A DNA stretch of 64,000 nt from Salpingoeca rosetta. Lineage: Eukaryota; Protista; Choanoflagellata. Under the pieces are notes generated by a model. It was not told the origin of the DNA, did no database searches, and saw only the letters and a list, made by a program, of their open reading frames with translations. Below are positions 30,526 through 37,031 of this stretch, in pieces (position 1 is the first letter of the stretch; every line of letters starts with the position of its first letter). A program made the translations under genes and the position numbers. The DNA lies in contig JAWQFM010000008.1 in the NCBI GenBank assembly GCA_033442325.1, forward strand, positions 1,051,194 to 1,115,193, read 5' to 3'.

Positions 30526-33500
30526 ATGGCGGACGTGGCTTCTGTGGCGCTTGAGCACGAAGCACGAACTGCCAAGTTGAACAAGCGGCTCGGGTCACAA
30601 CTCAATCACAACGCCAGAAACTACATCCTCGGGTGCGTGGTGTGGCGTGCTGTCTTGTTGTGTGTTGTGGTGTGGTGTTCTGTCTTGTGCTGTGCTGTCT
30701 TGTTGTGTGGTGTGGTGTACACACACGCACCCTACACACACACACACACACACACACACACACACACACACACACACACACACACACACACACACACACA
30801 CACACACACACACACACACACACACACGCACGGACGCATGCACACACTTTAACTCACTGGCACTCGTGGACTCGCATTCAGCATTTTGCATGTGTATCAA
30901 GCTGGCGGGGGATGCGAAGAGCTGTGTATCGAGCTGGGGCGCGTGCTGCGCAAGGACAAACACATGTCCCTGCTCAAAGACATCCAGCCTTTGATCAAAC
31001 AAGAAGACCTGCAGAGATACAGGAACGAAGTCCTGCTGTGGAAGATGACTGGCTCTCCACCCACACGCGTCAGCGACGCACACAACTACGAGCACATGCG
31101 GGTGCGTTCGCAGTACACTCGAGTGTTGTTGTTTGAGCTTCAGTCTCACTTGTTGCTGATTGAATAACATGGGTTGCTGTTGTTTAAACTTGATTATTGT
31201 TGTTGCTATTGTTTTTGTTGCTATTGCATGCGTACACACATGTTATCGCAGAAGTGCACGAAAACACACATCGCACAAACACGCCTCTTCACACACACAC
31301 ACACACACACACACAAACTCATACGCACCTTCTCACGTACGCAACCCATCTTCCTGCACGCAAAACCACGCTGTTCTTGTGCGTTTTGCAGGTCGGGCAG
31401 GCGCTGGCAAAGTGTGCTTGCTTCGAAACCGCCATCACGCGAAAGAAGAAGACGGGGCGGCTCGGGTTTGTGCTGCGTGACGTGCGCGGCTGCGCAGTTG
31501 TGCGAACGGTTGAAGAGGACTCGCCAGCATCACGCGCCGGTGTGCGAGAGGGGGATCTTGTGGTGGCTGTGAACCGCTGTCGACTGCAGTCCCCGGGTTA
31601 CGATCACGCCACCGCCCTCCTGCGCAAGACAGCGGACAAGACAGTGCGCCTCATGGTGGTGTCGCAGGCGTTCACCTCCGACCTGTTGTCGGCACAGCAA
31701 CAACAACAACACCACCAGCAGAAGCAGCGCAAGGATCGCCGGCAGCCACTGCAGCCAAAGAACCAGCAGCCACAACAGTCACAACAACCACAGCAGCAGC
31801 CACAACAACCACCCTTACGAAAGCAGCGACTGTCCCAGGCACAACACGTCTCGACCCCACCCTCACAGACAGCACCAGCTTGTGCACCACTCCATAACAC
31901 CACCAGCACTGCCAGCAGCAAGAAGCATGTGCACACACCGTCAACCTCGTCACCATCAGCACCGACAATTTCACCGCCTGCGCCGTTTGCGGTGGAGCAA
32001 ACCATCGCCTTTCGTCTTCCAGAGGAGCAGGGCGCGCTTGGCTTTGAGCTGCTTGGCGGGTCCGAAGACAACACCCCCATCACCATTGGCAGTGTCGACA
32101 AGGACAGTGTGGCGGACCAAGCCGGTCTCAGGGCCGGAGCACGCATCATCAGCGTCAACGGCGTCACGTTCAGCAACCTGCCCCACGCAGCAGCGGTGGA
32201 GGTGATGAGAAGCTCGCCGTTTCTTCGCATGGTGTTGCAGACGGACGTGCAGTCGACCGCCAAGCACCAGCACCAGCAGCGTCAACACTTGGACGACATG
32301 TGTGGTGCAGCAGAATCACCAAGTGTGTATTCCGTTGCCAGCAGCAACGGTGGCGGCGGTTATTCTTCGCAGGGAGTACTGGCAGATGTTTCAGCCTCTC
32401 CATCGTCCCTCGATGACACCATGTCACCTCCATTTCATTTCACAACATCCAGCCATCACAGCGTGCGCATCCGTCAGCATCAACAACAACAACGACGACG
32501 ACGACAACAACAACAACAACAACAACAACAACAGGAACGCGGTCATGAGCAGCACCAGCAGCACCAACACCAGCACCAGCAACCATCATCATCATCATCA
32601 TCATCATCATCATCAACAACAACAACATCATCATCATCATCGTCATCATCATCATCAGCGTGGCGGCTGCTACACCGCCTGCGCCCGTCTCTCTCCTCAG
32701 CCTCAATTGGACGCTCCCGCGCACGCCAGCAGTCACCGCACCTTGACGATGGGTATCGTGGTGACAGGAGCAGTGTGAGCAATGACGACGCTGCCCACGA
32801 TACATCAACGGACATCCACGTACATGGTGGGCGTGGTGGGCGTGCCAAAGCACGCATGCGGCGACCCCGCGTGACTCACTTGTGGCGACGCAAGCGCGCA
32901 ACCGTTTCTGCACATCCAGCCAGTTACACCCGTAGTGAGGCAGCCATGGGTAGCAATTGGAGCTATGCTAACAACAGCTACACCACCCCCAACAGTACCA
33001 ACAACAACAACAACAGCAGCAGCAGCAGCAGCAGCAGCAACTATGGTGCTGGCGGAGCACGCAGTGTTGGCTCCAATGCTTACAGCGGTGGCAACAGCGG
33101 TTTGGGAGGACGTGTGGTCATCACGTCGCCGCCACGGCAGGCACAGTGGAGCAAGCGTACAGGGGCTGCGTGGCACCTTCGCTACATGACATCACCGCGG
33201 ACGCATGCTGACAGACAAGACGGTGACAGTGGCGTTACTTTCCATGGCAGCACTGATGGCGAGGCCTGGGCCGACGCAGACGCCCATGACATGACAACAT
33301 CTCCACCACCACGCGCTTTCCGCAGCAGGCGGCAGTCTGCGTGGCTGTCCCCATCACCGGCTCGGGCCAGTGTCGGCTACACCCACCACTTGCAACAGCA
33401 GCAACGTCGACGACGCATGATTCAGCAGCAGCAGCAGAAGCAGCATCAGCAGCAGCAGCAGCAGCAGCAGCAGCGACACGGCGACCGCCACCATACCACG

Positions 33501-36500: not shown

Positions 36501-37031
36501 ACGCTTCCGGCAGCGCAGCCCAGCAGAGCGAAGGAAAGCCTGCGACAGCGCTGTGGTGGGGCTGGTGCAGTGCTTGAGAGCGCGTCGACACCGCGTGGCT
36601 CCCTGCTCTCGGAGCTATCGTCCTTTGACAGCGCACGACTGAAGAGCGTGACGCCTCGCACGGGGCCTGCTGACACACAGAGCATGCTTCTGTCTGAGAT
36701 TAAGCGGTTCAACCGCCAGTCGCTGAGCAGCAGCGTGCGGACAACGAGCGGCGCGTGCCTGCAAGCAAGCACACCGACCACAGACGGCACCAGCGCAAAC
36801 AGTGCATCCACAACCCGCAGTGGTGACTGCGACTTGGATGAGGAGGCTCTGGCCAACATGTCGCCCTTGCAGCGACGCCAGGCCACGCGACGGTGGACGC
36901 GGCCCATGAGTGCGTTTGAGGCAGCACTGGCCACGGCATTACAGCGTCGGTTCCAGGCGTGCAACAGCCCGAGCCCGACCAAGGGAGATGGGAAGCAGAC
37001 GCTGGATGACAGCTGGGCAGATGACGCCTGA
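30526..37031 (+). CDS. Harmonin/whirlin-type HHD-PDZ-PDZ scaffold with polyproline tracts and C-terminal WH2-like/C/A-like motifs (~1,988 aa; exons 30526-30632, 30882-31101, 31392-37031)
   Basis: HHD-like region: RTAKLNKRLGSQLNHNARNYILG/ILHVYQAGGGCEELCIELGRVLRKDKHMSLLKDIQPLIKQEDLQRY. PDZ1: GRLGFVLRD...VRTVEEDSPASRAGVREGDLVVAVN. PDZ2: ALGFELLGGSEDNTPITIGSVDKDSVADQAGLRAGARIISVNGVTFSNLPHAAAVEVMR. Many PPPPP tracts, then RGSLLSELSSFDSARLKSV. Exon phases are consistent. Confidence 0.88.

Follow-up and report, generated by a model that had tools for sequence, protein, structure and literature searches.

Can a single choanoflagellate protein carry the head of a membrane scaffold and the tail of an actin nucleator? 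The question was raised by a gene on the forward strand of a 64,000-nt stretch of Salpingoeca rosetta DNA (contig JAWQFM010000008.1, positions 1,051,194 to 1,115,193; the whole stretch is called the window hereafter). The original prediction, made from the sequence alone, had proposed an Usher-type scaffold with a harmonin-homology domain (HHD) and two PDZ domains, fused to a WASP-like tail of polyproline, two WH2 motifs (V), a C helix and an acidic end (A). Judged by its sequence, the gene encodes a probable HHD, two PDZ domains, a disordered region, polyproline, WH2-WH2, a C-like helix and a Trp-bearing end in one protein. That it serves as a modular actin-assembly scaffold, with a WASP-style V-V-C-A tail engaging Arp2/3, is the function we propose, at slightly less than even confidence.

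Scaffold domains and tail share one reading frame

The three-exon model gave a spliced coding sequence of 5,967 nt that stayed in frame and encoded 1,988 aa with a single terminal stop, which reproduced exactly the predicted length of the product. Because exon 3 is one continuous 5.6-kb open frame, it is the frame itself that connects the PDZ domains with the tail. A relative recovered from a Logan assembly (P0001, 1,256 aa) likewise had a single open reading frame (ORF) spanning PDZ1 to the tail. Its contig (L001; Logan SRR14727191, 4,757 nt) was AT-rich and also bore homologues of exon 1 and exon 2, the exon 1 homologue with an intron at the identical position and phase; both intron positions of the window gene were common to the two. 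As both introns were retained, L001 must be DNA or unspliced RNA, presumably from a related choanoflagellate. In a search of its own genome, the S. rosetta gene was found to be single-copy, and neither its HHD exon nor its C-A region had a paralogue; the weak matches obtained there, a WH2 array in another gene and an S/T-rich stretch, were rejected as paralogues.

The tail is conserved in two relatives

The tail profile was searched by HMMER, exhaustively, against 1.84 billion representative proteins with a threshold of E<=0.001, and only two relatives were obtained, P0001 and P0002. Alignment of P0001 with the window protein extended over PDZ1, PDZ2, a conserved island (aa 859-884), the polyproline, the basic cluster and the whole tail. 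P0002 was a GC-rich metagenome fragment, and its full ORF (L022:6-887) contained a 14-Pro tract, four WH2-like repeats, the helix and EEDW. In these two independent relatives the tail was the most conserved part besides the PDZ domains; loss of the tail motifs from orthologs had been named beforehand as an outcome that would speak against the prediction, and the tail was kept in both. No animal protein with this tail was found among the 1.84 billion representatives, in line with the earlier statement that the architecture was not known from animals. Two metagenome locus scans with tail alignments gave no confirmed further member, and a word-index search from the P0001 tail returned P0001 itself only. 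The resemblance to the C-termini of PRR11 and MTFR1 that had also been suggested was not borne out, only the two close relatives having reached E<=0.001.

A conserved helix fits the WASP-family C-domain rule and precedes a weakly acidic Trp end

According to Kollmar et al. 2012 (PMC3298513), a WASP-family C domain has large hydrophobic residues at three positions, with three residues between successive ones, followed by two or three R/K and then by one more large hydrophobic residue; the A domain is an acidic end of the protein whose Trp is terminal or nearly so. The window helix, F1951-xxx-L1955-xxx-L1959-Q-R-R-F1963, fits this C-domain rule and lies exactly where an amphipathic helix had been placed after the WH2 motifs; in P0002 the corresponding helix reads L-xxx-L-xxx-L-Q-RR-F. 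A core of A-L-x-x-A-L-Q-R-R-F-Q-A-C-x-S-P-x-P, ALQRRFQAC included, was invariant in all three family members, the tails of which were overall only 35-50% identical. This helix was also the most confident one in the AF2 model of the tail (pLDDT 73-76). Seventeen residues separate the C motif from LDDSWADDA, and in all three proteins the Trp has two or three acidic neighbours (LDDSWADDA*, LDDSWVED... and EEDWAVG...). When compared by hhalign with the canonical WASP-like gene of S. rosetta (L011), the C helix and the Trp were collinear with its C-A region (P 0.001).

The V-C-A order was further examined as a grammar (WH2, then C, then [DE][DE]x0-1W) that had to fall in the last 160 aa and to finish, with its Trp motif, at most 12 residues from the C-terminus; its patterns had partly been picked after viewing the sequence. 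This grammar was obtained in 0/20,000 shuffles of the whole protein and in 0/20,000 shuffles of the tail. Arp2, Arp3 and actin genes were all present in the S. rosetta genome, and its Arp3 exon was 100% identical to PTSG_12505; an intronless actin-related ORF (L009) was judged by eye from its translation not to be Arp3 and was dropped. A complex prediction of Arp3 (P0003) with the last 57 aa, run with no controls, yielded ipSAE values of 0.26 and 0.19 and a mark of 0.34, and was counted neither way. Because that prediction gave no answer, we infer the Arp2/3 step from the motif grammar and its conservation.

Between the C helix and the Trp end, the stretch C-x-S-P-x-P (36957-36977) contains two proline-directed Ser sites that are invariant in the three proteins, and phosphorylation there could add negative charge to the weakly acidic A region. 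The thrombospondin-repeat matches that the C-A profile drew from PDB were set aside as chance similarity to CNSPSP, and the other tail-profile search against PDB (A2 alignment) gave zero matches. A further S. rosetta locus (L014; G000:C6:980530-983613, minus strand) carries at least five consecutive WH2 motifs after polyproline, a C-like LMDMLASAMDARRQVI and a separate last exon that ends in SDDEWD. From its sequence it looks like a multi-WH2 VCA protein, and so provides another S. rosetta VCA with a short A region.

The tail motifs belong to the WH2 family at the family level

Helices were predicted by AF2 at both WH2 motifs, and the EIKRFNR.SLS of the second motif was identical in P0001. The sole Pfam match on the tail was that of Thymosin to a 54-aa tail piece, below the cutoff at E 0.005. 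Among PDB entries, the best match of the tail was 4pl8_H (E 0.1), a Tb4/Cobl tandem-WH2 chimera with the same spacing. Clearer results were obtained from the family as a whole. Pfam WH2 passed its gathering score on P0002 (26.5 vs 23.1 bits), and a profile of eight WH2-like repeats matched six PDB sequences, all of them WH2 constructs solved with actin; the top match was N-WASP 3m3n_W (E 5.7e-5), and Cobl and Tb4 chimeras were also matched. Aligned by hhalign with seven Pfam-detected WH2 motifs of S. rosetta, the repeats gave a probability of 80% (E 1.4e-5). A whole-genome scan with Pfam WH2 matched other S. rosetta genes and missed the window gene. One WH2 of L014 shares the spacing of motif 1, LL-xx-L-xx-F-D-xxx-L-K-K-V. 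In the Atlas, the cluster nearest to the tail was one of WHAMM fragments, 81% with WH2, at a score of 0.87, which was taken as a lead only. By these profile matches the tail motifs are, at the family level, members of the WH2 family, and we consider it highly probable that they bind actin monomers.

A probable HHD precedes two PDZ domains

The two PDZ domains predicted near the N-terminus were recognized by Pfam. The best PDB matches of PDZ2 were PDZ domains of LIN-7B, PDZD7, whirlin (KIAA1526) and harmonin; the PDZ region was generic in both PDB and Atlas rankings, and the Atlas returned only generic PDZ clusters. In the 1,944-aa ORF no further Pfam domain was detected at E<=1, that is, no third PDZ, second HHD or coiled coil as in the Usher scaffolds. 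The label "Usher-type" is therefore kept for the architecture only; the PDZ domains themselves are not specifically Usher-like.

The N-terminal 90 residues are helical. Exon 1 covers helix A and the beginning of helix B of the HHD, and the tests for this domain were run on exon 2 alone (helices B-E), which is 49% identical to the L001 exon. Exon 2 matched Pfam CCM2_C, a harmonin-homology family, at E 0.009 (16.6 bits vs a 27.3-bit cutoff), as did exon 2 of the relative, and HHD_RTEL1 at E 0.14; both were below threshold. With a two-sequence exon-2 profile, all five matches among all PDB sequences were HHDs (CCM2, PDZD7 and whirlin), again below threshold at E 0.03-0.11. The AF2 model of exon 2 had four helices (pLDDT 64). 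When it was compared by VIA-align with 48,161 chains, the HHDs of RTEL1, harmonin, PDZD7 and whirlin ranked 5, 6, 7, 21 and 23; the Z values of these five chains (4.2-4.8) were within the helical background, and their sequence identities (13-28%) were the highest in the list. Foldseek of the same model (pLDDT 64) against PDB gave nothing at E<=0.001, and searching the Atlas with exon 2 gave no useful information. Since every sub-threshold result pointed to HHDs, the N-terminal domain was accepted as a probable HHD; of the earlier claim for a harmonin-homology-like helical domain, the kinship is probable in that only HHDs were matched in the profile searches, but all of these matches remained below threshold.

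A disordered middle carries polyproline tracts and a basic cluster

After PDZ2 follow about 1,450 aa without a Pfam domain, rich in Q, S, H and R, in which no family was matched at E<=1 up to the tail, consistent with the disordered stretch with polyproline tracts that had been described. The conserved island within it may be a linear motif for some partner. All seven polyproline tracts fall in the last 860 residues; the tract at aa 1789-1807, with a 15-Pro run, lies 36 residues upstream of the first WH2 motif, and the six others lie further upstream. Acid-flanked tracts were kept in P0001 and L022, and we regard them as putative ligands of profilin and of the Ena/VASP EVH1 domain. The basic cluster was also kept in P0001.

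A segment at 35661-35702, MLGELKLSLQRR (aa 1533-1544, then GG), echoes the pattern of the tail helix, with hydrophobic residues at i, i+4 and i+8 and a Q-RR. It has no closing hydrophobic residue and was not kept in P0001, and the resemblance is probably due to chance.

Gene model, transcripts and features of the locus

Both introns rest on their GT..AG signals, the reading frame and the homologous structure of L001, because neither was covered by mapped RNA: intron 1 was outside the 6,000-nt stretch to which RNA was mapped, and the bins across intron 2 were at zero depth. Contigs of two probable-RNA runs (X6 and X7, the RNA nature of which is unproven) tiled 33.49-37.05 kb with no mismatches and unspliced, and no GT..AG joint was found inside exon 3 in four runs. 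All RNA joints that were reported sat in CAG/CAA repeats and none was GT..AG. The RNA depth peaks at 31650-31850, 33850-34050 and 34850-35050 likewise corresponded to CAG/CAA (polyGln) repeats, with reads from other loci. Such peaks and joints are not evidence for expression or splicing of the window gene.

The coordinates of the features are collected in Table 1. Dinucleotide repeats, (CA)n/(TG)n, were present at 30700-30830 (intron 1), 31290-31320 (part of intron 2) and 37040-37110 (3' flank), and they give rise to numerous spurious Cys/Val and His/Thr ORFs on either strand. The downstream neighbour (40019-42467, minus strand) encodes a doublecortin (DCX) domain and EF-hand pairs according to Pfam, with no evident connection to the gene described here.

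Table 1. Features of the scaffold-tail gene, in window coordinates.
Feature	Position	Strand	Description
Exon 1	30526..30632	+	Met1 to first two bases of codon 36; ATG at 30526, donor GG|GTGCGT
Intron 1	30633..30881	+	249 nt, GT..AG, donor GTGCGT
Exon 2	30882..31101	+	remaining HHD (to about residue 90, window 31044) and linker
Intron 2	31102..31391	+	290 nt, GT..AG, donor GTGCGT
Exon 3	31392..37031	+	single 1,879-codon open frame and stop, PDZ1 to C-terminus
PDZ1	31425..31664	+	about aa 121-200; Pfam PDZ_2/PDZ; kept in P0001
PDZ2	32001..32243	+	about aa 313-393; Pfam PDZ, E 2.4e-22
Conserved island	33639..33716	+	aa 859-884, AQMLSSMLTLPAPSESAY; aligns with P0001
Polyproline region	34440..36485	+	seven tracts, most after acidic residues ([DE]..LP[LS]PPPP...); from translation
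Lys/Arg-rich basic cluster	36141..36353	+	aa 1693-1763, directly before last polyproline tract; from translation
WH2/beta-thymosin-like motif 1	36591..36650	+	PRGSLLSELSSFDSARLKSV; Pfam Thymosin E 0.005, AF2 helix
WH2-like motif 2	36672..36734	+	DTQSMLLSEIKRFNRQSLSSS; LKKT position degenerated to LSSS
C-like amphipathic helix and C-x-S-P-x-P	36915..36977	+	FEAALATALQRRFQACNSPSP; invariant core, C-domain rule
A-like end	37002..37028	+	LDDSWADDA, Trp1984 five residues from C-terminus; 4/9 residues acidic

Comparison with known actin regulators and scaffolds

The WASP family comprises WASP, WAVE, WASH, WHAMM/JMY and the proposed WAML and WAWH, and its members share a common logic of a specific N-terminal domain, a proline-rich domain (PRD) and a VCA (PMC3298513). 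The window protein follows this logic. Like N-WASP and the WASP family it presents, in the same order, a basic cluster, a proline-rich region, two WH2 motifs, a C helix and a near-terminal Trp; the basic cluster is placed much like the basic region in N-WASP and WAVE, and the repeat profile of the window family matches the N-WASP WH2 tandem in PDB. By four of five sequence criteria the tail looks like a WASP-family P-V-V-C-A, P standing for the polyproline. In contrast, its head is HHD-PDZ-PDZ and not WH1, WHD, WAHD, WMD or IMD; it has no GBD, about 60 residues intervene between the second WH2 motif and C, the A region is barely acidic and the C-A similarity is not statistically significant.

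The head, with its probable HHD, resembles that of harmonin and whirlin, which have an N-terminal HHD followed by two PDZ domains, and whirlin also has a proline-rich region after its PDZ domains; the HHD matches (CCM2, PDZD7, whirlin and harmonin) were all sub-threshold. Animal Usher scaffolds such as harmonin and whirlin organise stereocilia and microvilli, and reach actin only through partners. To our knowledge, Usher scaffolds have no WH2 or VCA tail.

The nearest parallel in design is the formin delphilin/GRID2IP, with the order PDZ-PDZ-HN-PDZ-HN-FH1-FH2, the PDZ/HN head of which is regarded as an animal innovation of unknown source (PMC5628938). In both proteins, PDZ and harmonin-N-like (HN) domains are joined via polyproline to an actin module; that module is FH2 in delphilin and WH2-WH2-C-A in the window protein, in which the HHD comes first, and homology between the two is known for the shared domain types only. 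Cobl, Spire and beta-thymosin proteins also have WH2 motifs of the E-[IL]-x-x-F-[DN]-x-x-x-L type in tandem, but neither the RR helix with a Trp end nor a PDZ/HHD head.

Does the tail act on Arp2/3?

A number of observations weigh against a WASP-style tail that acts on Arp2/3. Pfam WH2 gave no match to the window protein even at E<=10, and the second WH2 motif lacks a basic LKKT-type ending. The first and last positions of the C motif are Phe, outside the VILM/VILMY sets; the hhalign probability against the L011 C-A region was 22%, and the C-A profile found no known C-A region in PDB. The net charge after the C helix was about -3, -1 and -2 in the three proteins, which is barely acidic, compared with about 18 acidic residues and roughly a dozen consecutive Asp in the canonical WASP-like tail of S. 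rosetta, and the Trp of P0001 lies 12 residues before its C-terminus. In raw RNA-seq, two runs (X16 and X17) contained nearly zero unique reads, and at this very low coverage no read spanned head and tail. Finally, collar microvilli and filopodia are unbranched bundles, for which Arp2/3 is not the expected nucleator. The original prediction is accordingly narrowed: both WH2-like motifs were placed exactly and matched WH2 through family-level profiles, but Pfam WH2 was silent on the window protein itself; at the C-terminus, the Trp and its acidic neighbours were conserved, but the end is acidic in name more than in charge. As a candidate new nucleation-promoting factor (NPF) linking PDZ ligands to actin, the gene thus retains its architecture, its conserved tail and its WH2 motifs, and is weakened by the A region and by the lack of a significant C-A match. 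That the tail activates Arp2/3 appears to us, from its motif pattern, just short of evenly balanced.

A protein that assembles actin independently of Arp2/3 would be the most substantial alternative. It could be a Cobl/Spire-type nucleator or a membrane-clustered polymerase similar to Ena/VASP or to the PRD-WH2 part of WASP, in which the RR helix would provide extra actin binding, as the FAB does in VASP, and the Trp end would be a site for another partner. Such a protein would suit unbranched collar microvilli or filopodia, and it draws on the WH2 evidence, the firmest in the whole case: the top single match in PDB is a Tb4/Cobl chimera whose tandem WH2 motifs have the same spacing, and one relative has four consecutive WH2 motifs, as in Cobl and Spire. 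The weakly acidic A region and the undetected C-A homology fit it as well, and WASP-family polyproline and WH2 are reported to be able to accelerate elongation by themselves (PMC5753033). What it leaves unaccounted for is the conserved, acid-flanked Trp after a helix that obeys the C-domain rule, in a V-C-A order exactly as in NPFs. An acid-flanked Trp near the C-terminus after a C helix is a hallmark of Arp2/3 ligands, and Cobl, Spire and VASP need none. We therefore regard an Arp2/3-independent factor as a doubtful explanation, yet one of considerable weight.

The invariance of the C-terminal peptide admits another explanation, in which the protein is a scaffold or adaptor that merely holds or sequesters actin monomers, its tail having no nucleating activity of its own and the C-terminal helix serving as a docking peptide, for example for its own HHD in a closed form. 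HHDs bind amphipathic helices, and here a probable HHD is located at the opposite end of the protein. The invariance of ALQRRFQAC and S-P..P, in tails of only 35-50% identity, exceeds the needs of an actin- or Arp-binding helix, and the invariant S-P sites would suggest a regulated switch. However, the conserved polyproline-WH2 array and the conserved Trp would be left unexplained, and autoinhibition through the C helix is a WASP-family trait as well, so that this adaptor overlaps with an Arp2/3-engaging scaffold; we consider it unlikely as an account of its own. Still less can be said for the idea that the motifs arose by chance in a low-complexity tail or that the gene model was joined wrongly, in spite of the mostly low-complexity protein, the silence of Pfam WH2 and the very low expression. 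The 1,879-codon open frame, the joint conservation of head and tail in L001 with shared intron positions, the tail of a third family member and the absence of the grammar from 20,000 shuffles all contradict it, and we find it very improbable.

Proposed function and significance

If the gene does encode an Arp2/3-engaging scaffold, its parts could cooperate as follows. The HHD-PDZ-PDZ head would dock on membrane or cortical partners through their C-terminal tails or helices, while acid-flanked polyproline on the long arm would recruit profilin-actin and possibly Ena/VASP, and the basic cluster would contact acidic lipids. The last 150 residues would form the V-V-C-A module, in which each WH2 motif may hold one actin monomer and the invariant F-xxx-L-xxx-L-Q-RR-F helix and DDSW end may engage Arp2/3. 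Clustering on PDZ ligands would then lead to local actin nucleation, branched or seeded, possibly regulated by S-P phosphorylation, through the added negative charge, or by the C helix folding back onto the HHD. The binding events, the Arp2/3 step, the regulation and the cellular site in this scheme are all deduced, and a role in the collar microvillus is pure inference.

A lineage-restricted actin-assembly factor is a credible candidate for this gene. More tentatively, and with a confidence that stays well below even, we propose it as the founding member of a choanoflagellate-restricted class of Arp2/3 NPFs with a harmonin-type HHD-PDZ-PDZ head for targeting and regulation, switched on by clustering of PDZ ligands and perhaps also when the HHD lets go of the C helix or when the invariant S-P sites are phosphorylated. 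The N-terminal targeting domain defines the classes of WASP-family activators, and a class headed by PDZ and HHD has not been described there (PMC3298513), nor was one found in the literature. The S. rosetta gene and its two relatives are the three sequences known so far with this tail, and their significance hinges on biochemical proof. Should the tail turn out to be independent of Arp2/3, the protein would still be new as an assembly factor built on WH2 motifs, and its C-terminal peptide would still be unusual in its conservation. The genetic tractability of S. rosetta makes the gene a testable handle on the construction of the collar or filopodia. If the proposal holds, fusions of a scaffold to an actin nucleator by domain shuffling would predate animals, and in the unicellular organisms most closely related to animals the tails of membrane adhesion proteins or receptors would be wired directly to actin nucleation.

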